64,000 nt of DNA, from assembly GCA_965644295.1 (NCBI GenBank), contig CBFFRP010000365.1:1-64000 (forward strand), in the 5' to 3' direction. The notes beneath the pieces were generated by a model. The model made no database searches, was not told where the DNA came from, and saw nothing but the letters and a program-made list of their open reading frames with translations. Position numbers and translations under genes: made by a program. The stretch's first letter is position 1. Each line of letters begins with the position of its first letter. This DNA comes from Paraphysomonas bandaiensis (Eukaryota > Protista > Chrysophyceae). This document shows, in pieces, positions 4,415 to 64,000 of the stretch.

Positions 4415-4560
4415 AAGCATCGGCAGTCAGTATTTCACTTTTCGGATATATATTGAAGCAAAATTCCTCCATAATACTGCAATACAACTACAGCTGGAAT
4501 ACACATAATTGTTGTCTCAATATTCGAGGCATCTTTCAACAAAAATATACGAAGGATGCA
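4415..4560 (+). mobile_element. Diverged copy of a ~150-bp MITE family (also in array units 2-4, and at 48553-48704 and 51825-51975)
   Basis: Aligns with the 48.6-kb and 51.9-kb copies over CAACTAC.GCTGGAATACA.ATAATTGTTGTCTCAATATT.GAGGCATCTT..AACAAAAATATAC.AAGGATGC. Confidence 0.7.
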
Positions 4561-4651
4561 CCTCAGAGTCGCACAGCTCGGCCTGGTATGCATCTCACAA
4601 TCTCATTCTCGAGACTTGTCGTGACAATATCATAACAAGACATAGCTGCGA

Positions 4652-15719: not shown

Positions 15720-17297
15720 ATGGACCCTCCTGAAAATGAGTTGGATATTGTCAAAAGGAAGATTGCTGCTATAGAAGTGAAGCTTGCTGATACAGAAGTG
15801 AAGCTTGCCAGAGCAGAAGCAGAAAGAGACAGAAAGCTTATCGAGGTGTATGCGAAACAAGCTATGGTGTATGAGAATCGTCTTGCGGGACTGCAGGAGA
15901 AAGAGAACCGACTCTCTCAAGCAGCAGGTGAGCTCATTGATTCCAATTCATGTGTCACCATTTAACATCTTCTGTTTTCCTCAAAAATATTTACGGCCGT
16001 AGGAAACTCCCCATCTACTATTGATATTCTTTTGAGCAAACTGGAGACAATGTCAATCGGGATGGTCGAGGTTGTCAGCAAAGTGGAGACAATGTCAACC
16101 AGGACGGTCAGCAAAATGGAGACAATGTCAACCGGGATGGCCAGCAAAATGGAGACAATGTCAACCGGGATGGCCAGCAAAATGGAGACAATGTCAACCG
16201 GGATGGCCAGCAAAATGGAGACAATGTCAACCGGGATTGAGGCTTTGCTTAAATATAACGAGGATAAGGAATCTGTCTCTGGTAGTGAGTTGAAGTTTTG
16301 TCATTACACTAGTTTTGGCTTTGGCGAATTGACACCCCGAATTGTCAAATGTGCCTTTGACTATGCTGCCACCAGACAAGAGTTTTCACAAATTAAGACA
16401 TGTGTTACGCAGTATACTCAAACAATAAGAAGTTTATATTGTGCCAAGAAAACAGAAGAGGTTGATTTTGTGCAGCCCTTGTCCCGTAATTTGTTGAAAG
16501 AGCTGGCGCAAGCAGTTGACATGGGAGGCAATGCAGAGGTGCAGTACAAAAATCACAGCCTTGCTGTTAAATATGACAGCAAAGAATATCACATTCATGG
16601 TGAAATGGACGCTGGATTATTTTTGAAAGACACAACTTTCTGTCTGTGCCCGTGGGAAGACAAGGATATGAGTAACGAATGGTCTTGGAAATACGTGACA
16701 CAATGTGCTGCTGAGATGGCGGGCAAATTAGAGCACTTACAATTTGGATATGATTTTATCCCAAAACGATATTGTGGTATTCTAACCAATGGGAGATGGT
16801 GGGTGATAGTTTTCAGACACATCAACAGCGAAAGACGAAGGTTGTGGCTGCACACAACTCCAATTCAAGCCATTGATATCGCCGGGAATATTATACCTCG
16901 AGGTGTTTATCAAGTAGTAATTCTTCTGTTTCATGCAATGATGATTTCCAAGGAGGTGATGAAGGCGCTGATCGTCAAGACGAGCAATATTTTTGATGTA
17001 GAAAAATCTGGTCGCCATATCGTCAAGTATAGCCCGCATGAAGACGCATCGAGTGATGATGACGATGTGAAGACACACTCGAGTGAAGGTGGGAACATCG
17101 CTCGGCACAATGAGAGGGGTCAACATGGTGAAAATGGGGGGAAGCAGAGTGGTGGGCACCAGCATGCTGGACAAAGGTATGCATTGCAGGATATTGGCAA
17201 CATATGTAGTCCTTTGACTGTAAGCAACATCGCTGCCCACCAGAAATTAGTGCCAAAAAAGAATGTATTTACTGAAATTGGTCAGCGTGACTATTGA
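15720..17297 (+). CDS. REase-fold effector-like protein, copy 4 (~500 aa, diverged nuclease domain); intron 15928-16002
   Basis: Same structure, with ~13 amino-acid substitutions in the C-terminal half. Confidence 0.8.
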
Positions 17298-17382
17298 TGG
17301 GATATCTAGATGTAATCTAACAGTTTATGTATCTCTTGCTTCTCATTAGATTATGAGGGAATGTCAGAATGTCATATATTTA

Positions 17383-18838
17383 GGAAGACAAGGATATGAG
17401 TAACGAATGGTCTTGGAAATACGTGACACAATGTGCTGCTGAGATGGCGGGCAAATTAGAGCACTTACAATTTGGATATGATTTTATCCCAAAACGATAT
17501 TGTGGTATTCTAACCAATGGGAGATGGTGGGTGATAGTTTTCAGACACATCAACAGCGAAAGACGAAGGTTGTGGCTGCACACAACTCCAATTCAAGCCA
17601 TTGATATCGCCGGGAATATTATACCTCGAGGTGTTTATCAAGTAGTAATTCTTCTGTTTCATGCAATGATGATTTCCAAGGAGGTGATGAAGGCGCTGAT
17701 CGTCAAGACGAGCAATATTTTTGATGTAGAAAAATCTGGTCGCCATATCGACAAGTATAGCCCGCATGAAGACGCATCGAGTGATGATGACGATGTGAAG
17801 ACACACTCGAGTGAAGGTGGGAACATCGCTCGGCACAATGAGAGGGGTCAACATGGTGAAAATGGGGGGAAGCAGAGTGGTGGGCACCAGCATGCTGGAC
17901 AAAGGTATGCATTGCAGGATATTGGCAACATATGTAGTCCTTTGACTGTAAGCAACATCGCTGCCCACCAGAAATTAGTGCCAAAAAAGAATGTATTTAC
18001 TGAAATTGGTCAGCGTGACTATTGATGGGATATCTAGATGTAATCTAACAGTTTATGTATCTCTTGCTTCTCATTAGATTATGAGGGAATGTCAGAATGT
18101 CATATATTTAGGAAGACAAGGATATGAGTAACGAATGGTCTTGGAAATACGTGACACAATGTGCTGCTGAGATGGCGGGCAAATTAGAGCACTTACAATT
18201 TGGATATGATTTTATCCCAAAACGATATTGTGGTATTCTAACCAATGGGAGATGGTGGGTGATAGTTTTCAGACACATCAACAGCGAAAGACGAAGGTTG
18301 TGGCTGCACACAACTCCAATTCAAGCCATTGATATCGCCGGGAATATTATACCTCGAGGTGTTTATCAAGTAGTAATTCTTCTGTTTCATGCAATGATGA
18401 TTTCCAAGGAGGTGATGAAGGCGCTGATCGTCAAGACGAGCAATATTTTTGATGTAGAAAAATCTGGTCGCCATATCGACAAGTATAGCCCGCATGAAGA
18501 CGCATCGAGTGATGATGACGATGTGAAGACACACTCGAGTGAAGGTGGGAACATCGCTCGGCACAATGAGACGGGTCAACATGGTGAAAATGGGGGGAAG
18601 CAGAGTGGTGGGCACCAGCATGCTGGACAAAGGTATGCATTGCAGGATATTGGCAACATATGTAGTCCTTTGACTGTAAGCAACATCGCTGCCCACCAGA
18701 AATTAGTGCCAAAAAAGAATGTATTTACTGAAATTGGTCAGCGTGACTATTGATGGGATATCTAGATGTAATCTAACAGTTTATGTATCTCTTGCTTCTC
18801 ATTAGATTATGAGGGAATGTCAGAATGTCATATATTTA
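17383..18838 (+). pseudogene. Two 728-bp tandem duplications of the 3' half of copy 4 (ORFs 17396-18025 and 18124-18753)
   Basis: Sequence 16655-17382 is repeated at 17383 and 18111. The copies lack the N-terminus and the first catalytic Asp. Confidence 0.85.
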
Positions 18839-39486: not shown

Positions 39487-40577
39487 ATAATGTAATCTTA
39501 ACTTGATTAATGAGTGAATACACGTCCAGTTAACTTAGTAATCATCCAATTGTGTCATATCTTGACAGCTCTTTCACACTTTCTCAGGTTTTGTTTGTAC
39601 TACATCCTAAGATATGTCTATATAGTGTTACTAAGTTGTTACTAAGTGTGAATAGAAGTAAGTGTTACTAAGTGTCGAAAGGTTATGTAAGTAAAAGTTA
39701 CGTTGTATCGAATGTTAGTTATTGGTAAAAATGAAACAAACTAAGACTAAGGAACAGATAGCAAAAAATATTACTAAATAAGTAGAAACAAACGATGCAG
39801 GAAGAAGTGTTAAGTCAGCCGACGGAAATGAATTGGTTTCAGTGAGCTGGTCATGTCTCCAGTTCGGCTGTTCGAGCTGCCACATGCTGCTGCTCGTTTA
39901 AAGTATCCATTCTCTTGCGGCGAATATTAGTAACGAATCATTTCATCCAGTGTATCTGGACAAGTAAGAGCATGCAATGTCTGATAGAAGGGATCAGGAC
40001 TGCGGTCTTCCATGATCGAACACTCTGCAGGCAAGGGAGTAAAATCTTCCTCAAGCTCCAGAGCGCAAGTAAAACTCCAGGATTGTCAGGCAAGGGAATT
40101 TTACTTGCGCTCTGGAGTATATTCTGGATACGAGTGTATGGATGGGAGTTCTATGAGCTCTACTGGGATGCCCTTCGCGCTAACGAGAACAAAAGCGTCG
40201 TTTTTCATCGTCTTGTCATGGAGCATGCCAATAAAGAAGTGTCACTCCAGGCAACACTCACTGTGAGGACACGAATCTTAGTCGTGATGATAACTCTGAC
40301 TTGATTGCAGTGAAGTTGTGATTGTGTAGTAATCGCAAATGCGGCTGACTAAAGTGTGACGTCGAACAGAACATTGAAGTATGGGCAGGCACTGGTATGT
40401 GAACAGCGTTTTGGAACTCCAAGGAGCAGATAGGGATGGTTTGAGGGAACAAGATACCATCATCCAGCTGAAATCTTGATGTCGTGCTGCAGAAACCGCA
40501 ACTTCAATTAGATAGTAGCGAATGCCACGCACTTAGATTGTGATGTCTTGGAATTCCAATAAGGCAACAATTCTGTG

Positions 40578-40739
40578 TGTGGGAATAAGTCGATCCAGCA
40601 GAATATGTCGATCCAGCAAAAAAATCCAGGCTTTTTTGATGCATGTTGTTTTTTGACGAATATATTTCAGAGAAATAACGAAAAAAGGTCGATTTTTTTG
40701 CTGGATCGACATATTCTGCTGGATCGACTTATTCCCACA
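40578..40739. mobile_element. MITE with ~49-bp perfect TIRs
   Basis: TGTGGGAATAAGTCGATCCAGCAGAATATGTCGATCCAGCAAAAAAATC and its reverse complement flank the element. It is absent from the homologous site at ~20555-20590. Confidence 0.85.
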
Positions 40740-41679
40740 GAAGGAATTTGAGAGAGCGAATACACTGTGAATCGTGCCATTATTAACTGTGAGTTCGTAT
40801 TGCAAGCTTCATCACTATGCGGGAGAGCTATTGTGAAGGTTTATGCCTCATTATCGACAAAATGAGCGTGAAAAGTGGGTTCCCGTGACCTGTAGAAAAG
40901 CGGAGAGTGTATGTCTCGAGGTTATTGAAGATGACGCAAGCAAGCAGAATGCCTATTAGTATTGGAGGGGAGAAAAGCATTTGAAATGCGCAGTGAAAGT
41001 TCAGTCCGAGTAGGTCGTTGATTCATGTGCTGATTTACAGCATGAAACCGTGTTTGAAATGGAAAAAGAAGACCATGCAGGTGAGGTAGTGGATATGCTC
41101 GACTTACTGAGCAATGCTCTCAGTCGTGGTAAATAGAGAATTGCATCAGAAATGGCTTTAAGCTCCAGAGACTCCGGGCTAGTGTCAGGTAATAAGTAGT
41201 GGTACTAGAGACTAGAGTAGTAGAGTGTGTAGCTGGAGTACTATTGGGCTGTTGAGTAATAATCAGTTCATTCATTGGGGTACAGTTATTGCTTTTCTGT
41301 TACATGCGCAAGCAATAATGAGACCTAGATGGTGTACTGTAATGTACTATAAGATTAGGTGAAATTTATATATGCTCAAGATTTGTCGTTAATTTGCAGC
41401 AAACGCATGCATGTGTATGTGAATATGAAATATATGATGTACATTGTATACTAACCATATTACATGCATGCAATATTTGCTAGTTAGAGTATGCTTCCAC
41501 AATAGTCTTGTAGGTGAATACCTACTGTTCTTACGTTCTTACACCTAGACAACCGAGACAATCTACTCGTACGAGTCATGGGAATTCGAGAAGAGAAAAA
41601 GTCAAAAATTATAAAAAAGTACCTTTTTATATTTAATTCCAACAAGCACAACCATGTTCCACTATTGATTTAATATGTG

Positions 41680-41920
41680 TACCGGCACCAAGCAAGCTCC
41701 AGCTAGATCTACACTATACTTGCATGGCCTATATGGGATTACAAGAAACCCCGCGCATGCAAGGGGAGGAGGGGGCGGTCTATACTGAGTCATGCCTGGT
41801 CATGATCTATGCGGTCAGTTACGTTGGTGCACTTGTAGACTGGTGGAAGAATCAGTGCAAAATCTCGGTGTTATAAGTGGTATACCAGCGAACTTAACTA
41901 TGGCCACGCCCTCGGAATGG
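41680..41920. repeat. Dispersed repeat with an inverted homolog at ~57478-57862
   Basis: Shared blocks CTAGATCTACACTATACTTGCAT, ATTACAAGAAACCCCGCGCAT and AATCAGTGCAAAATCTCGGTGTTATA. Confidence 0.75.
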
Positions 41921-42519
41921 GGCAAGTTGAATAATACATGCTGTATAAACAATCAGAGTGTTGTCAAACATAACATACATGCATATGTCGTCTGGTTGTG
42001 TTCATATTGCAGGTAATGCATGCATGTGAGTTGAGTGATACATCATGCTGTCTATAGCTATTAATACTCAATGAAATATAATAATATGACGATAGATTCG
42101 TGCTCAGCACCTCTGAATTAGTCTACCAGCATCATTCCTCCATCAGCATCACTGTGAGCAGACATACTCAGACAAACCATGATCACAAGGGCATCATGAT
42201 GGATGACAGCGACAGATGGTTGAAAAGATGAAGACACTCACTTGCAACTTAACGCAACACTGAACTGATGAGAGATCAAAGTGACGGTCACGAGAATGAA
42301 ATGGATGTGTGTGTGTGTGTGTTATGGGCAGATGAAAAGAAATCACCAAATGAAAAATAGTGTGTCTCTTCAAGATACGAAGTGTGTATTATGGTATCTT
42401 TTTTTGTTCTGATCGTGTGAGTGCGTTGTAGTATCGTAGAAGTGAGATGATGATGTATGTATATACCACTCTCACTTCTTTCCTACACTTCACTCCACTT
42501 CTATATACAGATATATGAG

Positions 42520-45500
42520 ATGGGTAATATTACTGAAGCTGCTTATAAGGGTGATTTCAATGGTGTGAAGAGGTGTGTTGAGAGGGGTATCAATATCAAT
42601 ACACGAGATGAATGGGTAACAGACATATACATACATACATACATACATACATACATACATACATACATACATACATACCTACATACATACATACATACAT
42701 ACATACATACATACCTACATACATACATACATGCATAGAGTGTTATGAGGCTCATATGATATTTTTGTTATTGTTTTGTTTTGTAGGATGGTTCTACAGC
42801 TCTTCACTATGCTGCCTATAATGGTCACAGAGATACAGCAGAGTATCTTATAAGAGCAGGAGCAGATATAAATATTCAAAATAATGTACGTAACCCCTCC
42901 ATACAGACATACAGAGATACAGAGATAGAGTGTGATGAAGGCTCATGTGATGTTGTTGTTTTGTTTTATAGTATGGTTTTACAGCTCTTCACTTGGCTGC
43001 CGCTTATGGTCACAGAGATATAGCTGAGTATCTTATAAGAGCAGGAGCAGAAATACATATACAAAACAAAGTACGTAACCCCTCCATACAGACATACAGA
43101 GATACAGAGATAGAGTGTGATGAGGGCTCGTATGATATTTGTGTTATTGTTTTGTTTTATAGAATGGTTGGACAGCTCTTCACTCTGCTGCCTCTGGTGG
43201 TCATAGAGATATAGCTGAGTATCTGATAAGAGCAGGAGCAGATATTAATATACAAAACAAAGTACGTAACCCCTCCATACATACAGACAGACAGACATAC
43301 AGAGATAGAGTGTTATGAGGGCTCGTATGATATTTTTGTTATTGTTATTGTTTTATAGGGTGGTTGGACAGCTCTTCACTCGGCTGCGTATAATGGTCAC
43401 AGAGATATAGCAGAGTGTCTTATAAGAGCAGGAGCAGATATAAATATACGAACCAATGTAAGTAACCCCTCCATACATACATACATACACACAGTGTTCG
43501 AGGGCTCGTATGTTATTGTTATTGTTTTATAGGGTAGTTTTACAGCTTTTCACTGGGCTGCCTATAATGGTCACAGAGATACAGCAGAGTGTCTTATAAC
43601 AGCAGGAGCAGATATAAATATACAAAACAAAGTACGTAACCCCTCCATACATACATACATACATACATACAGACAGACAGACATACAGATAGAGATAGAG
43701 TGTGATGAGGGCTCGTATGATATTTTTGTTATTGTTTTGTAGGATGGTTGGGCAGCTCTTCACTGGGCTGCCTCTAGAGGTCACAGAGATACAGCAGAGT
43801 GTCTTATAAGAGCAGGAGTAGATATAAATATACGAACCAATGTAAGTAACCCCTACATACATACATACATATATTCATACAGTGTCAATAAGGCTCATAT
43901 GATATTATTGTTATTGTTGAATAGGGTGGTTGTGCAGCTCTTCACTGTGCTGCCTCTAGAGGTCACAGAGATACAGCTGAGTATCTTATAAGAGCAGGAG
44001 CAGATATTAATATACTAGACAATGTAAGTAACCCCTCCATACATATATATATATTCATACAGTGTCAATAGGGCTCATGTAGTATTATCGTATTTGTTTC
44101 TTAGGTTGGTTCTACAGCTCTTCACTATGCTGCCAGTAAAGGTCACAGAGATACAGCTGAGTATCTTATAAGAGAAGGAGCTGATATTAATAAACGAGAC
44201 ATTGTATGTAACCCCTTTATACATATATATATACATACAGTGTAAATAGGTCTCATGTGATATTATCGTATTTGTTTTATAGGTTGGTTCTACAGCTCTT
44301 CACTATGCTGCCAGTAAAGGTCACAGAGATACAGCTGAGTATCTTATAAGAGAAGGAGCAGATATTAATAAACGAGACATTGTATGTAACCCCTCTATGC
44401 ATATATATATATATATACATGCATACATACATACAGTGTAAATAGGTCTCATGTGATATTATCGTATTTGTTTTATAGGTTGGTTCTACAGCTCTTCACT
44501 ATGCTGCCAGTAAAGGTCACAGAGGTATAGCTGAGTATCTTATAAGAGCAGGAGCAGGTATTAATATACGAGACAATGTAAGTGACCCCTGCATACGTGT
44601 ATACATACTTATATGCATACATATATATATATACGTATATAGTGTTATGAGGCTCATATATAAGTGTGCATGTACTTCACTGATTCTTTATGTATATACA
44701 TACGTACATGCATAGAGTGTTATGAGGGCTCGTATGATATTTTTGTTATTGTTTTATAGTATGGTTGGACAGCTCTTCACTATGCAGCTCGTTATTGTCA
44801 TGGAGATACAGCTGAGTGTCTTATAAGAGCAGGAGCAGATATAACTATACCAATCAATGTAATATACATATAACATATATACAGTGTTGATAGGGCTCAT
44901 ATGATATTTTTTTAATAGATTGGTTTTACAGCTCCTACTTGGCTCTCTCTAATTGTCAGAGATATATATCTGCGTATCTTTTAAGATCAGGAGCAGATGC
45001 ATATATACGAGACAATGTAAGTAACCCCTACATACATATGTGACATATCTGTATGTTGTCCTCTATACAAGGGTGAGTGTATCCTGACTACAGTGGGTAT
45101 ACGGTTGTAGGGTAGATGTTGGGTGAAGACATGTGGTGCTGTTGGGTACGAGTGGTAGATGGGTACGCATTTACATTTGCACGGGTACGAGATGTACGGG
45201 GCTTAAGTGTAGAGCCATCTTGTGCAAGATTGCTATGAGGAGTCACTCTTCTTAAGTTATGAGAGCATAGGTAGGAATAGTACTGATAATCATCTTTTGA
45301 GTAATGATCAGGGAATGACATTAAAGTATACGCGTGATGCATCTAGGCATAGTCCTCTGCTCACAAGCCCCACATCCCAGTCGTTTCACATCCATCCATC
45401 CATACATACATACATACATACATACATACATGCATAGAGTGTTATGAGGCTCATATGATATTGTTGTTATTGTTTTATAGGATGGTTTTACAGCTCTTCA

Positions 45501-45572
45501 CGTGGCTGCCTTTGAAGGTCACAGAGATACAGCTGAGTATCTTATAAGAGCAGGACAAATATTCAAAGCAAT
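42520..45572 (+). CDS. Ankyrin-repeat gene 1: N-cap exon, 11 intact 99-nt one-repeat exons and 2 frameshifted exons; 3'-truncated, possibly a pseudogene
   Basis: Exons 42520-615, 42787-885, 42972-43070, 43163-261, 43359-457, 43533-631, 43743-841, 43925-44023, 44105-203, 44283-381, 44479-577 and 44760-858 all have GT-AG boundaries in phase 0. Each repeat exon encodes [33 protein letters not shown]. Exons at ~44919-45016 and 45481-45572 are damaged. Confidence 0.88.
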
Positions 45573-46722
45573 GTAAGCAACCCCCTCCATACATACATAC
45601 ATGCATACATGCATAGAGTGTTATGAGGGCTCGTATGATATTTTTGTTATTGTAGTGTCATCAAATCCACTCACACATACACATACAAACACATATATAC
45701 AGCATACATATAGACATATATATACAGCATACATGTTAAAGTAATGGATGACTTGGATTCATATTCCAACACTCTAGATATGTACTTCAATGGTGGCTCG
45801 CAGGAAGAACCGGTGGGACCTGTCTGTTTACGTCATCAGATAGAGGGGTACGCTCCTCGATGTGCTCTTAGTGTGTTATGGATGCAGCTGCAGCATTCCT
45901 TGATGAAATTTATGATGCTAAAACTGAAGCAGCAGAAGATGGTGAATCGTGCAGTGAGTGAAATCGAACAAATGATCTTAATTTCACACAGGCGACTTGT
46001 CGTTATCAAAAACCGTAATATGAACAAGAAAGCGGACACAAAGAAGGAAGGAAGTGAGACCAACAACCATCAGAGGATTTAAGTTCTTGGATGATTATAT
46101 TATGACCTCTGAGTCTTCCTTCTCCATCGAGTACTCTGGGAGGAGCCACTGTTACGCTCGGAAGAAGTTATAAACATTACACGATAAAGAACCTAAGTTG
46201 TATTCGATGTGTTCAACACCATTCATTTACTACTATAGTGTACAAACCACACACTCTGTAATCGTATCATGTATAGTCACCAACTTCTACTTCAGTTTCA
46301 TACTACACAATATAATGTACTAATTACATGTATATATAACTTTCGATCCTTGTATCCCACATAATACTGCACTCTCAATTGCAAGTATATAGAATCTTCA
46401 GATCCCAACATCCTCCAGGACAGTGGGATCTTATTATTATTGATGGACGGCAAAACCATGGATTCATTATTCATTTGGTTAGCTATAATTTGAAAATCTA
46501 CAACAGAAAAGTCTGGAAAAGTTATTTTTTAATGTTATTTTTATTACAGTAATGATATTTTAACAACCATGCGTCGTCGTCATCGGCCCGTAGATGATGC
46601 TTGATCTGAACGCACCAGCTACAACACTTCTCAACCCATGTGTAGTCAGACTTATTCGAAATGGTTATTGCTGTGCAGAAGTGCAAATAGCAGTAGTTCT
46701 GACGCGTACACATACGACTCCG

Positions 46723-48315
46723 TTACAAGTCAGGAGGGCAATCAGGAACATCGCTTCCTGCATACTTCAACGGCGTAGGTTTTTCAGATAAATCAACACG
46801 ATCAAGCATATGATTGATATTTTCATCTGCATCCGCTATCAATCGGGCGCACACGGCAATGGCTCGATCGTCATCGCCATCAAAAGAGACAACCTTCCCG
46901 AATTTTTGGGTACTTTTTCCTTGTAAAGTCGTAGCTCCCGAAGCGGCTCGAAATACACTCGATGTCAAATTAATTTTAAAGGGACCTGAGGAATCTGGTA
47001 ATATGGGTTCTGAGTCGTGTAGTCTTCTCCCCTTACAGGTCAGCGTTTGACTTTTTACATCAACTCCACAAACGTTTTGAATTTCTGTCTTTAATTCCGA
47101 AACATTTCCTGAACATGGAACACGCAAATGCAAATCTCCCGTGCTGGTCGTGATTATGACCGCTACAGACCTATCTACAACCTCGCCGCCCCCACGGAGT
47201 CTCAATACCAAATGAAGTGTTGATTCCTTTTGGATATTATAATCATCTAATGTCAGCTCTTTGTCGAACAGTAAACGTGCGCTGGAATCAGAAAGGAAGG
47301 CATGAATGACAGGTTTTGGTGGCAGAGAAAAACTTTCTAGAGTCTTCTCGTCACCGTCACGCATAACCACCGGGGCGTAATTCGTCGTGGTATTCATTCC
47401 AGGAAATAACTGTCCATTTATTGTTAGGCAGACATCGTCCACAGAGACGCCGAACCTCTCACGCATCGATTCCTTGATCTGTTTGACAGTGATGGACGGC
47501 AACAATCTGAACTCATATCGTTCCGATGAGCAGTAATTCCCTGTAACCTCTATGGTTACATCCCACATAACAGCAGGAGTATACTTAATTTTAACGAGTC
47601 CGTTCTCTGCACGCTGACCGACAATTCCAGTGTTGGCTGGAGCCAGGGAGAGGGCACGGCGTTGATCATCTGTAAGTGCACTGGAATCTTTTCGTTCGAC
47701 GATTGCCGCTGCACTTGCTTCCACGGCTAAACGTGTACGATAAAAGGTAAATTTCTTGGCCACCTTAACAGGTCTCTCAATTACAGCAGTTTCGTTTGCA
47801 TTCAAGAGCCAAGATCCCATACGATGTCCATCAATTTCAAGCTGGGCAGCACACTGTGAATCCGAGAAAGGACTTGCTAATTTAACTTTGTAAGTGGAAC
47901 CATGAGGCAGAACATACTGTATCTGAGAGGCATCTTCAGACATTCGGATGTCAAATTCGTTTCCGATGTCATCAAGAATACTCATGTAATTAGCCAATTC
48001 GGCATCCTTGGATGAATTACCCGAGGGTGTTCCTAATAGAAAAGAGAAGTGAAGAAAAGAAGCGAAGTGATGGCCTTACCTAATGGGTACCTTCGAGAAG
48101 GTATCCTCTCGCACAGTCGTTTGCCAGCAAATATCAAACGCTGTTGATCGGGCGGACATCCTTCTTTATCCTGTACAAAATGCATTATTGATGATATATA
48201 CATATGAATAATTCTCATTTACTTGGATTTTTCGCTTCACATCAGCAACGGTATCGGTGCGTTCCACATCCAAAGTGATCGTCTTTCCCGTTAGAGTTTT
48301 CACAAATATTTGCAT
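46723..48315 (-). CDS. Multi-ubiquitin-like-domain protein (~497 aa) with a split ubiquitin; introns 48171-48222 and 48033-48079
   Basis: [21 protein letters not shown]|[17 protein letters not shown] splices in frame to ORF 47997, which contains [22 protein letters not shown] and further Ubl-like segments. Confidence 0.85.
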
Positions 48316-48552
48316 GATTTATTTGACACTTGAATAAAAGAAATAATCAGAATGTTAGTGATGTTGAATGAAATGATTGCTATGAACTCCTTCATATAGA
48401 TATGCATATACATACATATACATATGATCAGCTTGAGGAAATAAACCAAAGAAAGGAAAAAGAAGATTTTTTCAGGAATTCCAAGAATTCTTCGTATGTA
48501 TGTATCCTCAAGAGCCAAAAACTGAAAAACAACATTCTGACTAGAGAATATA

Positions 48553-48704
48553 CGTATAGGCATCCTTGGTATATTTTTGTTCAAAGATGCCTCTAATATT
48601 GAGACAACAATTATCTGTATTCCAGCCGTAGTTGTGTATCAGTAATATAGAGAATATTTGCTTCAATTTATTCCCGAAAAAATAAGATGCTGACTGTCGA
48701 TACC
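48553..48704 (-). mobile_element. ~150-bp MITE (TIR consensus CGTATAGGCA)
   Basis: Inverted homolog of 51825-51975 and 4415-4560. Confidence 0.75.
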
Positions 48705-49354
48705 ATAACAGGCAGAAACCAGCAGTACGGTATGAAGGTCAGTGTACATGCATGTACAGCTTGAGGCAAAGATACGTCCAGCTGTCTAGCTTCTGTTATG
48801 ATTATTTTGCCTGATGATGCAAATGGGTATGCTGGGGGGCTATTGTATGATGATTGATGCATGTGATTGGTACAGCTGCTGGTTAAGTACCGTACCCTTT
48901 ATATTGAGTTACATTGTCTGATGATGATGCAAATGGGTGTGCTGGGCTATTGCGTGATACTTGATGCATGTGATTGGTGTAGATTCATTTGTGTGGTAAT
49001 GATTATGACGTGCGTGATTTGGTGAACTCCAGCTATGGTTTAAATCACGTAGCCTACAGGAGCAGATTCAAGAGGACACCCGGGTGTGCAGTATAATAAT
49101 CTATTTCGACATATCCTCATGGGAAGTTCGGATTATTACCAGGCTGGCGCTACTCGTGCACCTTTAGCTCCTGGATTTTTGACAGGTGAATGATATAGTG
49201 TAAAGCTATTTGTTGTACATATCTTTGGTTTCTTTCTGCTATATGCCTTTGTATAGAGTTATCACATTCGATTACTTCATTCTAATTCTTTATTTATAAC
49301 TGAAGAAATTCGCCAGAAACCTCCGTCCCACCCCTCCACTAGTGGACCTTCGTC

Positions 49355-49700
49355 GGCAGTTCATATGACAGTTCATCGGCAGTTCAATTTACGAGCGCGC
49401 TTCATATGGCAGTTCGTATAACAGTACAAACTTTCGAAAGGTTTATATGGCAGTTTGTATGATGGCAGTTCATAGTGCATATTTTATATGTCTATTATTC
49501 TATGTTGTATGGTATTGTAAGGACCATTTAAAACATAATCCTGGCATTAGAATGCACTACAGCTTTATCATATATATCATGTTAAATTTGCATATCAATG
49601 GTTTCAAAAATATAGGTTCATATGAATGGCAGATCATATGACAGTGCTAAATTCTTAAAGTTCATATGGCTGTTTCTATGTCTATTATTCTATGTTGTTT
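49355..49700. repeat. Cluster of short GTTCATATGGCAG-like repeats (possible TE subterminal region)
   Basis: The motif recurs about 8 times, and ATGTCTATTATTCTATGTTGT occurs twice. Confidence 0.55.
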
Positions 49701-51824
49701 GAACGTATAAACTCCCAACTGTACGAGGTTCGGCCTTTCCTCATTAAGTGCTTGAACAGGATTGTTCACATGCATAATGTATAAATCACAGTTTACGTGA
49801 TGACATCGTGTTTATCACTCCACCATATAGTAGTTACTCTGTCATGCTGTAAAACTCGGAGCACTTCGACAATCAATAACTACTTCTTTCATTATCCTTC
49901 TAATTCCTGTAGCACTACCGCAACAAATATAAGAGTAAAAATAATGACTACTATAGCTCGATATACAATTCAAAAGAATTGGCTCCTAAGAAAACAGGAT
50001 ATTATATGCTTTAGTAATAACCAGCTATCGGGTTATTCTATACTATACAAGCTCTCTATTGTATATACTTAAGTTTGTACATGCTATCTGTACAACATAG
50101 GTTGAATATTATTATTATTACCATATCTCACATTAAGATATATGATATATTATGACTATGACTACTCATGCTTATCATTGATATTTATATAACCATTCAA
50201 AAGACAAAGAAAGACAGGATTATCAACATTGAGACATAATGATGAAGATAATGAGTGATAATATTTATGTATATGTTCTTATTATATATATATATTGACT
50301 TTAAGGCTGGAGAAGTTTACTGAAGAATTCCGGGTTTGATATCCACACTGATAGATGTGTATTACCAGATTATTCAGTAATACAGTTATACATTACGTAT
50401 TTCCTTCAGTGTTTATTGGGGATTGATTGTACTTGGAAGTACGTATACAAGGTTTCAACTACAATGAGAATATTGAATGTATCTTCCCTTATACAGTGAT
50501 GATATTATGATCAACTGTGTTAGACTGATGTGTTTGGTATTGAATATGAATGATGTTCATTCCATTGATCACGGAATTGTAGGTGGATGTATATTGATTA
50601 TTGATAATAAGATGCAATTTCTTCACTCTGGAAATTACTTGTAGATATTATTGTAGTTGTAGACATATTCATTGTTATTCATTTATATCGTTAGTACTAT
50701 GGATGGGGGGACCCTTGACAGTGTACGAGAGTCTGCTACTCTGGAAACAGTATGGATAACTCTTAGGGTTATGCTAGGAGGTGTAGATCCATCTATTGCC
50801 AATGCAAGTAATGAACAGATCAGGAATATAGGCATTGGTTTTGGATTGGATGATTCTGACGTAGAAATCCTAGTCTCTCATATTCGTATTTCGTATATTC
50901 TTATGCTTGAATGGATACAATTATGATGAGTATCAACTCTCTATGAATCAAGATCTACTGAATAACATAACTCTGAGGAAAATACAGTAATGCTATCGTA
51001 TCAGTTTCGGATATCATGATATCCACGGTGCGCGGTGGTAGGGGTTGATGTGTTGACCAAGTTTGGTCACAATAGACATTTAGTTTTATCAATTTGTAAT
51101 CGTATAGTCGAATAGTGTCATTAGGATTTTATATGGTACTTCTAGATACATACAGGTACATAGTATAATGTGCAGTACTATGATTGTGCGTCATTATGAT
51201 CTTATATGATATATGATACCGCGAGCTCTGCCATACACACAGATATGTATATATATTATACATGTACTACATACTATGCTGTACATTAACATTGTCATTA
51301 TTATCTCTACATCCTTATACCACTATGCTACTACCTGGATTGCAGTGTACGACACACTCTGCACGATCTACTTAGACTGACAAGTGTCTTGACACAGAGC
51401 TAAGATACTATAGTATTGTTCAGGCCTGATAAGCACAAGGTTTGGAATAGCTAGAGACACACAAAACTTTTCTGACCTTCCTTTCCCTGGGTTGGACAGA
51501 GTGACCAGTGCGTTCGACTGGAGTCGGATTGGTCTGGACATTCGGAGAGTTGTGTTCACACTGGGGTTGGTCTTACACTCAACAACACACCACTCACAGT
51601 GCCCTTCAATGATATTCTATAGCGCCTATCCAACAATATTACTCTCGCCGTGGGTAACTTGCATTCCTGGTTTGGGTTATGTAGCCTAGAGTGCATATTG
51701 TTCTCTCAGTCCTGGACAAGGGTGGGTGTGACTCCATATCTGTTTGCAACCCCAAGTCTCCAGCTATTGTGTCTTGCTCCCCATCAATATTAGCTCATTG
51801 CTCCATTAATATTAACAAGAAGAC

Positions 51825-51975
51825 CGTATAGGCAGTCAGCAACTTATATTTCGGGAATAAATAGAAGCAAATATACTCTATATTAGTGATATACAACTAC
51901 GGCTGGAATACAGATAATTGTTGTCTCAATATTAGAGGCATCTTGGAACAAAAATATACCAAGGATGCTAATACG
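51825..51975 (+). mobile_element. ~150-bp MITE (TIR CGTATAGGCA..TGCTAATACG)
   Basis: Homologous to 48553-48704. Confidence 0.75.
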
Positions 51976-52149
51976 ACTCCAATGCAATATATCTGGATGT
52001 GGGTGTGAGTCCAGTGGAATCGGGAGGTTTTTGGGTGCTCAAATTCCCGAATTTTGAATCCTTACACACCCAAAAACGACTGTGAGGTAGGTTTTTTCGG
52101 TATGAGTAGTTTTTTTCTGTGACTTTTTTTTTCGTCAATTATCCTCACA

Positions 52150-52206
52150 GTCACTTCACTTCACTTCACTTCTCTTCACTTCACTTCATTTCTCTTCACT
52201 TCACTT
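52150..52206 (+). repeat. (TCACT)n tract directly upstream of ankyrin gene 2
   Basis: Direct pentamer run. A similar pyrimidine tract and CACTTCTATATACA.ATATATGAGATG precede gene 1. Confidence 0.85.
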
Positions 52207-52225
52207 CTATATACATATATATGAG

Positions 52226-55200
52226 ATGCCTCGTATTACTGGAGCTGCTTGCACGGGTGATTTGAATGGTGTGAAGAGGTGTGTCGAGAGGGGTGATGAT
52301 ATCAATACACGAGCTAGGGTGACAACCATACATACATACATAGAGTGTTATGAAGGCTCATGTGATGTTGTTGTTATTGTTTTATAGGGTGCTTTTACAG
52401 CTCTTCATTTGGCTGTCTCTCGTGGTCACAGAGACATAGCTGAGTGTCTGATAAGAGCAGGAGCAGATATAAATATACAAGACAATGTAAGTAACCCCCA
52501 CATACATATACATACACTCGTATGATAATATTGTTATCGTCTTATAGGGAGGTTCTACAGCTCTTCACAGGGCTGCCTCTAGAGGTCAGAGAGATACAGC
52601 TGAGTGTCTTATAAGAGCAGGCGCAGATATTAGTATACAAACCAAAGTAAGTAACCCCCACATACATACAGACAGACAGACAGACAGACAGACAGAGAAA
52701 GAGTGTGATGAGGGTTCGTATGATATTTTTGTTATTGTTTTATAGAATGGTCGTACAGCTCTTCACTCGGCTGCCTCTAATGGTCACAGAGATATAGCTG
52801 AGTATCTTATAAGAGCAGGCGCAGATATTAATAATCGAACAAAAGTATGTAAATCCTCTATACATACAGTGTTATGAGGGTGCATATGATATTATTATTG
52901 TTTTATAGAAAGGTTGTACAGCTCTTCACTGTGCTGCCTCTAGAGGTCACAGAGGTATAGCTGAGTATCTTATAAGAGCAGGAGCAAATATAACTACACG
53001 AGATGTTGTAAGTAACCCCTCTACACATATATACATATATACATACATACATACATACATACATACATACATACATACATACATACATACATACATACAT
53101 ACATACATACATACATACATACATACATACATACATACATACTTACATACATACATGCATACAGTGTTATGAGGGCTCATCTGATATTATTGTTATTGTT
53201 GTATAGGATGGTTGGACAGCTCTTCACAATGCTTCCTCAAGAGGTCACAGAGATACGGCTGAGTATCTCATAAGAGCAGGAGCCGATATAACTATACAAA
53301 ACAATGTAAGTAACCCCTCGATGCACATATACATATATAGTGTTATATGGGCTCTTATGTAAATATGCATATCATATTTACTCCACTGACTCATTATGTG
53401 AAAGAAGATAAGTGTATGCGGCGATGCACTGTGTCACTTATTTTATGATGTTTATTGTTATTTTTTGCAGGATGGAAAGACTCCTGTTGATGCGGCAAAA
53501 GATGATGCGATGCGTGATATCATCAACAATGCACATGTTAGTATGCATACTGTATGTTTCATCATATTCGTAAAACCAGAGATATAACCTAATTGGAATC
53601 ATATGTGTATTGCATAGGCTGAGAGGCAGAGACAACAAGAGGAGGAAGCTGCTTCCGCCGCTGCAGAGGTATGTGTGTGATGATGATGTAGTTATATGGC
53701 GTGATATGTTTGATAGTATTGGTATGGTTGGTGTATTATATAGGTGTCGTGTTTGAATGGGTTTTAATTGAGTTTGTGTGTATTGTATAGGTTGAGACAG
53801 AGACAGAGACCGCAAGAGAAGGAAGCTTCTGCAGAGGTATGCGTGTGATGATGATGTAGTTATATGGTGTGATAAGTTTGATAGTATTGGTATGGTTGGT
53901 GTATTATATAGGTGTCGTGTTTGAATGGGTTTTAATTGAGTTTGTGTGTATTGTATAGGTTGAGAGGCAGAGACATCAATAGGAGGAAGCAGCTACCGCT
54001 TCTGCAGAGGTATGTGTGTGATGATGGTGTGGTTATATGGTGTGTTATGTTTGAGTGCCCTTGACTGTGACCATATATCTATGTGTATGTTTGGCGCAGC
54101 TGTTAAGGTGAGTAGCACCCACTTATACATGTGCTCAAGCTTCCATATGTTCCACAGAAGCCTCATTCTAAGGAGGTGTTCAAATGGCTGCGGAACATAT
54201 TTGCCGGTATGAGTTTTGCGCCGACCCCCTTTTTCTGATGTCGCTACATATATATTATGTTTGCATTCGTATATTATATGTACTATCATGGACAGCTGTA
54301 TATATATGTGATGTTATATTATGTATACAAATTAAGAAACGTATAATAACAGCTGTGATCACTTGTAGGCACACGCATTGACGTCAAGTCTGTGTTCGAC
54401 ATATTTGACACTTTGATTGCATGGCCATCATTGGGACAGTGCTACATATTTGATGGAGAATAATGGTAGCGAGCTTAAAGAGATGGGCATAACGGACTTG
54501 GCTGTCCGTGTCCGACTCATAAAGGGCTTAAAAGAGCTTTTCCCTCCCCTCTGTCTCCGCCCTCTCCGGTGTCGTCTCCTACTTCCCCTTATCTTGTGTC
54601 CTCCGGTGAAACTATTGAGAATATACAGCCATTGACTGTGACATCAGCAAAGAGAGGAGTGTATTGGGAACCTTCTGGATGGCATGTTCTCTGGTAACTT
54701 CGACCATAAAAACTTACACGCTCAATTCGAGAAACATGAAGTCATCATCAAGACCAATGGACGACAACGAGACTTGCAGCGGGAGTTAGCCGACCCTACC
54801 ATTAATATTTTTACTGCCGGGATGCTGGCGGTGGCACTGCTGAATAAAAGCAACCACGACGGCAGGATGTGCTCCCATGGCAAAGAGGAAGCCCTCTTAA
54901 CTAGAGCACTTTCATTCGATGGAGCATACGTGAGAGGTTTGCTAGCAGAGAAGATGAAAGGCATCAACAGCGGCTACACCGACATGTTATTTGCTATGTG
55001 CAGTTTCAACCTGCCGAGAGACCCACGGCTACTGAGGTGGTGGACCAGATTGCGGAGCTAGGATTCACTCGAGCCCATCGCAAAGGCCAAGAGACACTCC
55101 ATCACGTTTAAAGGGAGAATGAGTTCTTGCGACAGGAGGTGATAAAGCGACTGTCTTCCCTACATAAGCAGTGGGTGGAGTCCATTCAGTCAGTGATTGC

Positions 55201-56182
55201 GAGCAACACTCAATTTCAGCATAAAATTGAGCAATTTGAATATAAACGCTCGAGAATGCAAGCTGAGGATGCAGCTCGGGCGGAGGAGACTCAACAAAGC
55301 ATTATTCAATTGACCGATGCGATGAGAGGTATGCTGGGAAACCCGTCGTTAGCAGGTGTCGTGGATGCACTCTCTGTACAAATGGACTCTCTGCACAATA
55401 GCCTCGCACAGGTGTTGAGAGGCACTCACACCATCCCCACCCTCATGATCGTTCTTCCTCAAATCAAAGATTAATCGATGACGGGATACCTGCGCAGAGG
55501 GGCAACTCGAGTGTTCACTCAGAAATACACCCTCTTCTTCCTCTGCAGCCACACCCGCCGCATCGCCCCTTGCGGGCCAAATGAAGAAGGTGATGAGGTA
55601 TATAATACATACATGTGCATGCTTGTTGGTGCTGGTTATGTATATACATATACACGTTATTGCATACGTGTTTTACCTGCGTGGCATGTTACATATTACA
55701 CATTTATCTGAACTCTGTACTGTATAGAGGATACTTTATAAAAGTCTATCGGCAGTGGCTAATAAATGCCGGTCCTGTGCTGAAGCTCGGTCTGGTGCTC
55801 CTGAAGCTCGCCCTGTCATCAGTGGGGAACATCCCTCCACCAGGTGTGGTGGAGGCTCTGGGCACTGACCTGGCTGCCCACAAGCGCTATGTGGATAAGG
55901 CGCTCGCTCCAACACACCAAACAAAATGGAGTAGATTACGGAAGACATATTGGATAGTGTGGTGGATGCAGAGGACTCTATCGAGGTGCTGAAGCAGATC
56001 GACGCCTCCCCTGAGGGCAGCAGACTGGCGTATGAAACCATTAGGGTTGCCGGAGAAAAGTGAGGAATACCACATAGCCACGACTTGTGCTCCGCGGCAA
56101 GTGGTATGTGCAATGGCAAGTGCGGGTGGGTCCTCGACAATGACCTCGTGCAAAAGGCATATGAAGACGCCAACAGTTGTTA
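52226..56182 (+). pseudogene. Ankyrin gene 2: N-cap, 5 one-repeat exons, C-cap, repeated helical mini-exons, SAM domain and ROCO/COR-like C-terminus; disrupted downstream of the ankyrin part
   Basis: Exons 52226-318, 52388-486, 52548-646, 52746-844, 52909-53007, 53207-305, 53471-536 (DGKTPVDAA) and 53618-668. SAM-like EVFKWL..SELKEMGITDLAVRVRLIKGLKEL. C-terminus IPTLMIVLP..LFFLCSH..GYFIKV..WLINAGPVLKLGLVLLKLAL..GWVLD. Stops or frameshifts at ~53791-836, ~53980 and 55472. Confidence 0.75.
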
Positions 56183-56581
56183 AGTCGTGCGTGGTAATAC
56201 ACGTACCACCGCCGTGAAGATAATGTATGCATGTAGCTGTTATCTGTGCTCTCTCTGGTCAACGCACCAAACAAAATGGAGTAGATTACGGAAGACATAT
56301 TGGATAGTGTGGTGGATACAGAGGACTCTATCGAGGTGCTGAAGCAGATCGACGCCTCCCCTGAGGGCAGCAGACTGGCGTATGAAACCATTAGGGTTGC
56401 CGGAGAAAAGTGAGGAATACCACATAGCCACGACTTGTGGTGTGTGCAATGGCAAGTGCGGGTGGGTCTCGACAATGACCTCGTGCAGAAGGCATATGAA
56501 GACGCCAACAGTTGTTAAGTTGTGCGTGTAATACACGTACCACCGCCGTGAAGATAATGCATACATGTAGCTGTTATCTGT
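55910..56581 (+). repeat. ~350-bp tandem duplication of the 3' end of ankyrin gene 2
   Basis: 55910-56246 is repeated at ~56260-56581. Confidence 0.9.
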
Positions 56582-58222: not shown

Positions 58223-60100
58223 CAGGGATAGGGAACAATATATTGCAATACTATTGTTAGGTAGCGTTCCATCAATAGTATTGATGGATTTTTTAAACCG
58301 GCCCTACAATACTATTGCAATATATTGCAATATATTGTACAATATATTGCAATATATTAGTATGACTAATCAGTAAGTAAACACATCCGTAGTTTTCATT
58401 TTTAGTACTTGCCATATTTTATAAGGTCTAAGGTCACTTGATAATCAAACCCACTACTCTTAACTAATTAAAAGTTTCCTCATACTCATCCTCTGAGCCA
58501 TCATCGGTGACATCATCATCACCATATTCATTCAATATTGATTGAAATATGCTTGCATCCGGCCACAACTGTCGGTTAGCTTTCAGAAACAACAGTATAT
58601 TAAGTGTAGTAGGATGCATACGTTTGCGCAACACTGATATAATCAGTTTTGCTGCGCTGAACAGGCGTTCACACGTATTGGAAGTACATACTACATGACT
58701 CGTGCACCTGTACTTAGATATTTCAACTTTTCGCTTCTTAAGTTTTTGAGCTGATTTGAACTTCCCCATTAGTAGGTCTACTTTGCGAATAAGAGGCCTA
58801 ATGCCTTCGTCAGATCTTGTCACATCTCCTTGGTTATTCCTCTTCTCTTTGCTGCCAATGAGTTCATTGACAGCGAGATTTAGTCGGTGAGATGCACATC
58901 CAACTAGGGGTACACCTAATATATATTATAACATTCGACAATTTCACACAAGTAATACGGTGTTACCAGAATCAGTAGCCAATTTTCTGTTTGTAGCACA
59001 GTTATCTCCAAGATAAAACTCAACAATGTCGCAAACATTGTCAGCGTTAACCTCAACTCCAAATTTATTGAGAACTTCTACGATAGTATCAAACCAATCC
59101 GCAGCAGTGAATCCGTAGAATTTCTCTTCATCAGGTAGATCTTCATCGAAAACAGTGTTGTCATCAATATCCTCTTGCACATTACAAGACAACAATAACA
59201 AATTCGGAGTATTGGTTCGGTCGCAAAAGGTTGCAAATATTGCACTGTAGTGGTGGGAGTCCGACGTCCAACCGTCCATGACTAGACCAAATGTTGGTGG
59301 TAATATATCTTTAATCATATCACGTAGCTTCAGTTCCAACAGTCTCATATATTTTTTCAGTGTTTTTGTAGTTATCTTACCCAAAGAAGTCTTATTTCTA
59401 GTTAATTTCTTCTCACAGAAATTTAATGGAAGATTTTCCTCGACAATCCACTCCACCCACTCATAAATTGTTTTCGCCTTGTCTGAAGGCTGCAGAACAA
59501 AAGCATCCATGGGACCATTGGTGCAGACAGCCCGTAAATACCTCTTCAATGTCTCCTCCCACACATCATGAGAGAAAGTGTGATCCTTTAGATTGTTGTA
59601 TCCATTCCGAATATTCTGTTGTCGTTTACGTCCGCAGATTTTACACTCGTGTTTGTTCGGGACACCTTCGACCGGACTCCAAAAACAGCGGTAAATGTCC
59701 CTACTCTTGTATGCACTCATCATTCAGTTGTCTCTTCTTGTCACTATAGGATATATATACTATATTAAGAGAAGTACTGTACATACATGTGGAGAGGTGT
59801 AGAGTGCTGTTTGAGCTGGCGATACATAAAAAATAGAAAATAACATCAAAAATAGGCTTTTTTTCTTATTTTCCGGATATTTGTATACAGAGGCGTATAT
59901 TTTGCACCATACAGTTGAGGATCTTCTCTTATATGACTATCATAATATTGATTGCAATATATTGCAATAGTATTGTGAGCTCTATTAACAGAAACACTAT
60001 TGATGGAATATTTGACCAGTCCACCAATCAATATATTTTACAATATATTGCAATATATTGTACAATATATTGCAATACAATATATTGTTCCCTATCCCTG
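58223..60100 (-). mobile_element. hAT DNA transposon, internally deleted (transposase pieces 59723-58968 and 58916-58464)
   Basis: TIR CAGGGATAGGGAACAATATATTG with a perfect 8-bp TSD GCCAAGAC. Encodes a BED finger (CKIC..NLKDH..H), DGWT, GDNC, CASHRLNL and a dimerisation motif SNTCERLFS. The region between CxxH and the dimerisation domain is missing. Confidence 0.95.
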
Positions 60101-61877: not shown

Positions 61878-64000
61878 GGCCACTAATTATGGTGAAGACA
61901 AAAGACAAAAAGACGGAAGACATTTTGTCTTCCTGGCATGAAAAGCAGGAATTATGGGAGGACAAAAGACAGAAATCCGCCAAAAGACAAAATGTCTTTC
62001 TGTCTTCGGGAGACAAAAAGACATAAATATGAGCAAATTTATGTCTTTTTGTCTTCGAAGACATAAATCAAGAGTGGAAGACATTTTTACACAATAGAGC
62101 ACTAATTAGGGCTTATATACCTCATAAACAGCACAGATCGCAATGATTTACAGTCTCAAACATTGGCAGAAGCTTGCTATTGCTTTGGCAGGCATGGAGA
62201 CCCATGGTGTCAAGACCACGACGATTGCAGAGCAACGGAACAATACCGTCCGGCGTACAGATGAGGGAGTTGCTCATAAAGACGTTGGAGCTCTCCTGGA
62301 ATCGTAAAGAAGCTGAAAGGGTGAAAAGGAGAGCTCTAGCACAAATTCGGGAGGCGAGTTATATGATAATAATGACAGCAACCCCAAGCCATTTGACCCC
62401 AATGGTAGTTATCTTGGTCCGATCGATTTTATTGTGTTCATGCAAGTAGGCCTACCAGCTGGGGAACATTATTGGGATGGTTTCAAAGTTATTGTCGGTA
62501 ATGGTCCTTCCAGTGAGAAACCCCAAGAAAAGATACCAAAAGGTTCGAAAGGAAGAAAGGAGCAGCGCAATAAGAGCTTGAAGGAGTCTGGTTATTCGGA
62601 AGGAGATTCTAATAGCATAGGAGAATATGAGGTCAGAATGACAGCCCGTCACAATCGTATGGAGGAGTTCAGATATTATTTTACTATGTTTCCGGACGAC
62701 CAAGATATGAAGGACAAATTCAAAGAGTTCATCAACTCCGATCTGGCTCCAACGCTGAAGAGAAAAGCTTCCTCTGTATTAATGGACACCACCAAAAACG
62801 CACGTAATTCTACTATGAGCACACCTAGTTCTGCCATTGACAGTACCATAACATCGAACTCAACGAGCAGCACACCTCACATGCTGCAATTTACTTGCGA
62901 CTCTCCTGAGACTTCTGTCATTGAGAACTCTGTGGACCTCTCGGATATCGTTTCCGATTGAAAGATTATCAACATGCCAATGCAATTCTAATTATAGCAT
63001 ATAATCACATGTTGGTATCAGCTATACTATAATTACTGCATAATAATATGCTATTTGCTATGTTAATTGCATGAGCTAAGTAATCAACTGTACTTATGAA
63101 ACAAATCAGTTTTTAATTATGACCATACAACAGTTTTATCACTACACATACGCATGAAATGGTTAACAAATTTATTTCTGAGGACAGTGTGCTCATTTTC
63201 AACTTCAGTACGTACAGCTTCAACTGTATCAAACAATGTACCACATCGATGTTTGGGATCTGTTAGATCTGTGTCTCTCTGTACTCTAAGCACAACTTCT
63301 TTCAACTTACCGTTATTTTCTCTGTGAACTTTAAATGCTTTATCTATGTCGCATAAATCATGAAATCCATCTGGTCCATTCCATTCCACATCCTGCTCCC
63401 ACAGCTTAAACAAGTTATCATCCCTCATGATCTCATTGTGTAGACAACAGCATGTGAAAAATACATTGTCAATTTCCTCTTTACTTTGAAGCAGAATAGG
63501 AATTTTTAGAATTCGTAAACGCCCCTTGAGTATACCGAATGTGCATTCGATGTCCTTGCGAACCGATTCTAGCCACTTTGACCAGATTCTGAGGTCATGG
63601 GCAGATGTATTTTTAACTGGACACTGCATGCACCTCCATTTATGATATCCTCCATCACAAATGAAATATAAACCTCATGATCTCCTCTTCGTTGTCGTCA
63701 TGTGTATTCTTCACTTTTACGACCTAGAATACACAGTTCAAACAACCTCAAATATTCTAAACAGGATAATACCTATCGCGTCAGTATCAGCGATGGGTTG
63801 CCCTGTTAACTTATTCTTACGAAGTGAGGAATCTTTAGCCCATAGGACTATTTCTTGAAACATTTGATACGGAACTCGAAAACGCGTTCTGAAAAGCTTG
63901 CCTGATGCAGAGTCACGTGATATATAAAACAGTACCAGAAGTCATACCTTCACGAGTTGTTGGGTCTCTTATCCTTGCATCCCTCAGCAGGAGGCCCCAT
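61878..64000. mobile_element. PIF/Harbinger transposon (decayed): accessory ORF ~62174-62961 (+) and DDE transposase 63117 to ~63900 (-)
   Basis: TAA|GGCC terminus with AAGACAAAA subterminal repeats. Transposase motifs FRTRFRVPY, ICDGGYHKW and WLESVRKDIECTFGILKGR. Convergent two-gene layout. Confidence 0.85.

Follow-up and report, generated by a model that had tools for sequence, protein, structure and literature searches.

The window analysed here is the whole stretch of 64,000 nucleotides (positions 1 to 64,000, forward strand) of contig CBFFRP010000365.1 of the chrysophyte Paraphysomonas bandaiensis (assembly GCA_965644295.1), a marine flagellate that feeds on bacteria. It carries two genes, gene 1 (42520-45572 and onward) and gene 2 (52226-56180), in which every ankyrin repeat is encoded by an exon of its own. 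Our reading, to which we give a probability of about 0.62, is that both belong, in truncated form, to a family of Paraphysomonas proteins that act inside the cell as sensors and effectors and whose repeats have been diversified for binding non-self molecules. The evidence comes from selection at the codons of the binding face, from recombination among the exon cassettes, and from related arrays elsewhere in the genome that precede three types of tail.

Ankyrin exons of the window and their variable residues

A scan of positions 42000-54000 found 16 intact ankyrin exons, each exactly 99 nt long, bounded by AG and GT, in phase 0 and free of stop codons, 11 of them in gene 1 and 5 in gene 2 (Table 1). 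One exon equals one ankyrin repeat, with PF00023 (Pfam Ank) matched over 1-33/33 (47 bits). The exon scan and the Pfam match agree with the initial annotation of the window, which had counted the same one-repeat exons; two degenerate cassettes in gene 1 had been overlooked, and neither gene proved to be complete. Each array begins with a separate ATG-bearing N-capping exon, and a C-capping exon is present in gene 2 only. A single long gene over both arrays was ruled out because of these separate ATG and N-cap exons and because the RNA of gene 1 ends in local exons. No cassettes in reverse orientation were found within the window.

Mean identity between repeats is 68-70% in amino acids and 80-84% in nucleotides. 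Psim, from our own calculation rather than T-REKS, is 0.79 in both genes (high internal conservation being Psim >= 0.7, or 85% identity over 100 amino acids); identity over 100 amino acids is 87% in gene 1 and only 72% in gene 2. Variation peaks at exon positions 1, 3, 8, 11, 12 and 31-33, where the residues listed in the annotation were found again. Seven of these sites (1, 3, 8, 11, 12, 31 and 33) account for 51% of the pairwise amino acid differences against 21% expected, and the multi-base codon changes that had been described for the variable positions are concentrated there (310/660 at the seven sites vs. 88/933 elsewhere). The framework had been called almost invariant, which is too strong: it is mostly conserved, and positions 17, 20, 29, 30 and 32 vary too. 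The window repeats align in register with designed ankyrin repeat proteins (DARPins), with DARPin numbering equal to exon position + 2, so that the seven sites, in the order given, are DARPin positions 3, 5, 10, 13, 14, 33 and 2. Repeat position 10 is the most variable. In PMC3308923, positions 2, 3, 5, 10, 13 and 14 were randomised, of which position 10 faces the binding surface, and variation at position 33 is implied for an earlier design. The match with designed libraries that had been pointed out is thus found for exon positions 33, 1, 3, 8, 11 and 12, and exon position 31 corresponds to position 33 of the earlier design.

Selection on binding-face codons

The six DARPin-randomised sites were fixed in advance of testing. 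In a tree-free comparison, the proportion of nonsynonymous differences (pN) at these six codons over that of synonymous differences (pS) across all codons is 2.0-10.3 in 14 of 14 arrays, and the framework ratio in these arrays is 0.2-1.0, one four-exon array excepted. The ratio of nonsynonymous to synonymous rates (dN/dS, or omega) estimated by a codon model at the DARPin sites is 8.8 in the window (P = 9×10−5) and 3.4 in 75 exons of other arrays (P = 1×10−7), with a framework dN/dS of 0.6-0.8. The profile of entropy in the window is predictive for the other arrays (Spearman 0.65). Per-codon dN/dS and entropy had been proposed as a check on the hypervariability claimed for the binding face; the groove sites exceed 1 and the variation is non-uniform across codons, as that claim predicted. 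Positive selection on the concave face, a trait of repeats that are highly conserved internally, is present.

The silent rate in the variable codons is 0.35 and 0.71, and in neither case above the framework rate of 0.71. No adenine bias was found, and the fit was no better under a double-hit model. These results point to selection on the groove codons and not to local hypermutation.

A genome-wide family with three types of tail

Matches to the 99-nt ankyrin exon occur on ~30 contigs of the Paraphysomonas genome (contigs are given below by C numbers). On another contig of the assembly, one gene's protein is 100% identical to a protein of MMETSP1103 (taxon 36769, the chrysophyte genus Paraphysomonas); a diatom as host was ruled out. 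The 16 contigs that were read hold 214 full-length cassettes, 212 of which, including the 16 of the window, are intact and keep the frame and both splice sites; 150 distinct intact exons remain once two duplicate contigs are dropped. Arrays range from 3 to at least 45 exons, with 23 in the array of C260, and family introns are ~60-200 nt long. Downstream of the repeats come the C-cap, a coiled-coil linker of 45-54-nt exons, and then a tail, of which there are three types: a SAM-like domain, a kinase and a conserved end domain (C640, C124, C483 and gene 2 of the window); a kinase followed by RING-like cysteine clusters, identified by eye and without a Pfam match (C138, C263 and two on C618); and a PARP catalytic domain (C457, C235 and C71). 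No tail was found for several arrays. A single type of 5' flank precedes members of all three tail types. The linker is likewise built of one repeat per phase-0 exon, with 3 copies in gene 2 and 6 intact ones in C640 (L046 2766-3611).

The conserved end domain also closes the ANK-kinases of Pedospumella and some Roc-COR-kinases, where it follows the kinase; in the last exon of gene 2, the upstream part of this domain is the one in common with ANK-kinases and Roc-COR-kinases of other protists. A protein search with the C640 tail returned one weak kinase match, the ESM Atlas gave no relative for the last exon of gene 2, and an exact-match query with a window gene yielded no record. Two further loci were observed: seven C-cap exon matches 1.2-2.7 kb apart (G000:C186:139403-149176) probably represent short ankyrin genes clustered in tandem, and N-cap and C-cap matches 29 kb apart (G000:C461:8591-37946) possibly delimit an array of >100 exons.

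Duplication and recombination of cassettes

Within an array, the cassettes, each taken as an exon with its intron, have 80-94% identity to one another. Identical exons recur in genomic DNA as tandem blocks of two or more exons (C571, C114, C260, C526 and C508), as unequal crossover leaves them. In 4 of 6 arrays (C260, C526, C263 and C138; P < 0.01), breakpoints inside exons were detected by a homoplasy test, so that shuffling acts on homologous repeats rather than on exons as such, with the intron position convenient for the exchange but not its unit. Other protists have diverged ANK-kinase genes (L050, L054 and L055) in which a phase-0 intron lies at the same repeat boundary, so that the intron position is old, and homogenisation and expansion are derived. 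For 11 of the 16 window exons the nearest relative is in another gene. Diversification by duplication and by recombination or conversion, within and between genes, had been proposed from the window alone, and the block duplications, intra-exon breakpoints and intergenic nearest relatives agree with it. Gene-specific exon clades, which the annotation had named as evidence against it, are seen in the youngest arrays only (59/59 exons of the C526 family cluster with themselves).

On C526 (L038/L039, G000:C526:1590-22300), a + strand block of 30 cassettes without an N-cap lies opposite an array of 45 exons on the − strand, and the two meet near 9750 in an interrupted exon. This could be a real inversion or an assembly chimera. 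C639 and C526 have a 4.6 kb flank in common at 96% identity and differ in their first exons; they are alleles or paralogues, and short-read contigs do not span the array.

Exchange may also have joined arrays to new tails. The framework of gene 2 shows 7.0 differences of 75 nt to C138 vs. 13.6 to C640, yet gene 2 has a tail of the C640 type, which suggests tail or array swapping.

Truncation and transcripts of the two genes

Gene 2 has been disabled in its tail: ten indels shift the frame, the kinase has lost 420 nt through a deletion, one linker exon measures 46 nt, and there is an in-frame stop. This amounts to at least 12 lesions in the ~1.8 kb tail vs. 0 in the 0.7 kb ankyrin part, where ~4.6 are expected (Poisson P ~0.01). 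Either selection keeps an ankyrin-only product or conversion refreshes the repeats; the WD40 repeats of Podospora NWD pseudogenes show the same "rescued" pattern (PMC13449251). At the last exon of gene 2, the 3' end is duplicated in tandem (55910-56520).

Gene 1 is a close paralogue of C138 without C-cap or tail. The frameshift in its 98-nt exon leads to a stop after 21 codons and to a product of ~416 amino acids. Three sequence sets (X6, X9 and X17) behave as RNA, since the introns of a neighbouring gene are removed in their contigs, and X3 is a DNA set of another sample. The joints 44577>44760, 44858>44919 and 45016>45111 are found in both X6 and X9, and 45270>45481 in X6; the 45016>45111 junction occurs as loose ends in X17. 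Apart from a few substitutions, the DNA of X3 matches this 3' region. An assembly error behind the truncation was ruled out, since the 3' end is alike in RNA and DNA sets of independent origin. Two differences from the window were seen in other samples: 43777 G>A in a variable codon, which may be a paralogue, and 44796 T>G in codon 13 of exon 11, which gives the glycine typical of the family.

No in-register skip joint was found in the RNA sets, whose short-read contigs have little power for it. The frameshifted 98-nt exon (exon 12) is a natural test of the exon skipping that had been suggested, as its skipping would save the frame; it is spliced in in both X6 and X9. Exon order had been proposed as a further check, and at the 3' end it is identical in these two independent samples, as far as short-read contigs reach. 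Both sets also contain an exon-4-like piece preceded by an exon end other than that of exon 3, with two joints that go back in the array on a basis of 31 nt; an allele, an unread paralogue or back-splicing fits these joints. Intron ends are conserved; their folds are mostly no more stable than those of shuffled sequences (z −2.3 to +2.0) and no covariation was found in them, so that a recombination signal or stem in the introns was ruled out.

Table 1. Positions of the two ankyrin genes and their parts in the window
Feature	Position	Strand	Remarks
5' flank	41803..42519	+	found in members of the family that differ in tail; identity with the C138 paralogue 92%
Gene 1, first exon	42520..42615	+	96 nt; ATG and N-capping ankyrin repeat; GT donor
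Gene 1, 11 intact ankyrin exons	42787..44858	+	99 nt each; introns 75-182 nt; starts 42787, 42972, 43163, 43359, 43533, 43743, 43925, 44105, 44283, 44479, 44760
Gene 1, degenerate ankyrin exon	44919..45016	+	98 nt; spliced in; frameshift; joints in RNA sets
Gene 1, non-ankyrin exon	45111..45270	+	3' of the stop, untranslated; joints in X6 and X9, loose ends in X17
Gene 1, second degenerate ankyrin exon	45481..45572	+	92 nt; spliced on to 45778; array end without C-cap
Gene 2, first exon	52226..52318	+	93 nt; ATG and N-capping repeat
Gene 2, 5 intact ankyrin exons	52388..53305	+	99 nt each; starts 52388, 52548, 52746, 52909, 53207
Gene 2, C-capping exon	53471..53536	+	66 nt; 22 matches in the genome
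Gene 2, three coiled-coil linker exons	53618..54009	+	lengths 51, 46 and 51 nt; the first intact, the second frameshifted, the third with an in-frame TAG
Gene 2, SAM-like/protein kinase/coiled-coil exon	54370..55592	+	disabled; 7 frameshifting indels and a 420-nt deletion vs. the intact C640 paralogue
Gene 2, last exon	55729..56180	+	disabled; 3 frameshifting indels

Genomic neighbourhood

Transposon remnants (copia-like, probable hAT-like and Harbinger-like) surround the genes at 558-2642, 40500-41423, 58944-59723 and 63117-63629, and the element at 40500-41423 also flanks the C260 array. Between the two genes, 46723-48315 (− strand) is a spliced and expressed gene, seen in four of four sample sets, whose ubiquitin-like domains are seemingly split by a long insertion. 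A 150-bp element forms an inverted pair (92% identity) at 48553-48703 and 51826-51975; it recurs in a tandem repeat at 4419-15627 and, on C457 and C633, upstream of ankyrin genes. At 4964-18753 there are four near-identical tandem open reading frames of 410-446 amino acids with a stalk of variable 11-residue repeats, together with two partial copies.

Proposed function and alternative explanations

Under the sensor-effector reading, a complete member would consist of an N-cap, a variable number of ankyrin repeats from 99-nt exons, a C-cap, a coiled-coil linker and, unless it is missing, an interchangeable tail: SAM-kinase with the conserved C-terminal domain, kinase with RING-like domains, or PARP. 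The scaffold would be kept uniform, and the contact residues reshuffled, by heritable unequal crossover and gene conversion, and selection would favour new binding faces. Since the intron divides the beta-hairpin, leaving positions 31-33 in one exon and 1-3 in the next, each rearrangement would also make a new loop. Non-self proteins from ingested bacteria, parasites or viruses are the likely targets, on whose binding the tail would trigger defence signalling, and the window copies, their tails lost, may persist as ankyrin-only binders or repeat donors.

Several points weigh against this reading. The immune role is our inference from architecture and selection. The tails of C640, C138, C263, C457 and the window gave no Pfam match to NACHT, NB-ARC, Roc or COR. 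Of the ~30 contigs, 16 were read, some of them partly, and ~15 were counted by matches alone. Tree-based omega can be inflated by recombination, the very young C526 family has a framework omega of 2.1, and the 14 arrays are of common ancestry and hence not independent. Gene 1 alone is not significant in the homoplasy test (P = 0.09).

The same DNA mechanism and selection could instead act on fast-evolving internal partners, such as proteins of transposons and other selfish elements or partners in mating or kin recognition. Positive selection does not name the partner, and copia, hAT-like and Harbinger-like elements lie around the genes. The kinase, ubiquitin-ligase-like and PARP tails, together with the behaviour of the repeats, resemble fungal NLR sensors whose non-self roles are known (PMC4986451, PMC13449251), and on this analogy, which is an analogy only, we regard internal partners as unlikely, though to be taken seriously.

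Diversity might also arise in each cell, if exon skipping, back-splicing or somatic recombination mixed the cassettes within a clone, as has been hypothesised for the ROCO genes of Ectocarpus. All cassettes are in phase 0 and interchangeable, the intron ends are conserved, and the odd exon-4 joints of X6 and X9 and the 30 inverted exons opposite the 45-exon array of C526 could be read in this way. With 31 nt behind them, the joints could equally come from an allele or an unread paralogue; the included exon 12, the lack of an in-register skip joint, the common 3' order and the intron folds mostly without advantage and without covariation make such mixing improbable, within the low power of short-read contigs. 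The annotation's notion of a library fits the level of genome and population, and probably not that of the cell. A broader version, in which a NOD-less innate repertoire has cassettes recombined or alternatively spliced within a clone, truncated and inverted arrays as donors, and swappable kinase, ubiquitin-ligase and PARP tails, seems to us similarly doubtful. With short introns and existing cultures, within-clone reshuffling, raised for Ectocarpus in 2011, is directly testable by long reads.

Neutral turnover of tandem repeats would invoke minisatellite-like expansion and surface residues that merely tolerate change. In its favour, most natural ankyrins vary at the groove positions, neither window gene is intact, and short or repeat-rich contigs carry many of the arrays. 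However, relaxed constraint predicts omega ~1, and 3-9 was observed; this and the retention of frame and both splice sites in 212/214 cassettes largely refute neutrality, which we consider very unlikely. If the variable codons were targets of hypermutation, as happens with diversity-generating retroelements, the many multi-base codon differences would be explained, but this is hardly credible given silent rates that are not raised, the lack of adenine bias, the unimproved double-hit model and the fact that no template repeat was seen.

Comparison with known systems

Fungal NLRs carry hypervariable, internally conserved ankyrin repeats under positive selection (PMC4986451). Those of the Podospora Pa_3_8560 type resemble the Paraphysomonas family in the high identity of their ANK repeats, in positive selection on the inner helix and beta-hairpin, in variation of repeat number (here among arrays), in intergenic exchange, in swapped effector domains and in intact repeats inside pseudogenes (PMC4986451, PMC13449251). 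Unlike in fungal NLRs, the Paraphysomonas repeats are N-terminal and encoded one per exon, no NACHT or NB-ARC was seen, and the C-terminal tails are kinase, kinase-RING or PARP. The LRR-ROCO, LRR-kinase and NB-ARC-TPR genes of Ectocarpus, also a stramenopile, share with the Paraphysomonas family a phase-0 exon for each repeat, shuffling within and between genes, positive selection, and non-coding and possibly inverted cassettes (PMC3341825, PMC11378527); the inverted block of C526 recalls their reverse-strand LRR exons (PMC3341825). The window has this brown-algal type of equal-length phase-0 exons with one repeat each, and with the recombination described above, the likeness to the LRR and TPR exon arrays that had been noted is well founded. 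The differences are that ankyrin replaces LRR or TPR, that no Roc-COR or NB-ARC was seen in the tails read, and that the host is a unicellular phagotroph; alternative splicing is reported for Ectocarpus ROCO genes, whereas no skip was seen here, at low power.

The 90-bp-exon LRR genes of Tetrahymena are alike in belonging to a bacterivorous protist, in long exon-per-repeat arrays formed via unequal crossover and in a proposed immune role, and differ in the LRR scaffold, phase-2 introns and retrotransposon association (PMC6564038). DARPin libraries share the layout of N-cap, repeats and C-cap and the variable positions 2, 3, 5, 10, 13 and 14 (PMC3308923); they are synthetic, and the match comes from ankyrin geometry and not from a shared mechanism. 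The ANK-kinases of other protists (Pedospumella P0131; L050, L054 and L055) have the same order of ANK, kinase, coiled coil and C-terminal domain and the same phase-0 introns, but lack long arrays of homogenised repeats, theirs being diverged.

At the DNA level, the array behaves like the known repertoires, and it is not a member of the NLRs or ROCO proteins: no central STAND nucleoside triphosphatase (NTPase; NACHT or NB-ARC) was matched by Pfam in the tails, and no Roc or COR, the end domain alone being common to some Roc-COR-kinases. In the literature covered, which is incomplete, we found no paper on 99-nt ankyrin exon arrays or on this Paraphysomonas family. Each ingredient has precedent, and the combination of ankyrin, one repeat per exon and a NOD-less architecture appears undescribed. 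The family would be a natural sample of the residues that selection places on the ankyrin binding face, and would provide, after those already known, a third scaffold in stramenopiles for fast-diversifying repeat sensors, in a cultured single-celled grazer and without the usual NTPase switch.

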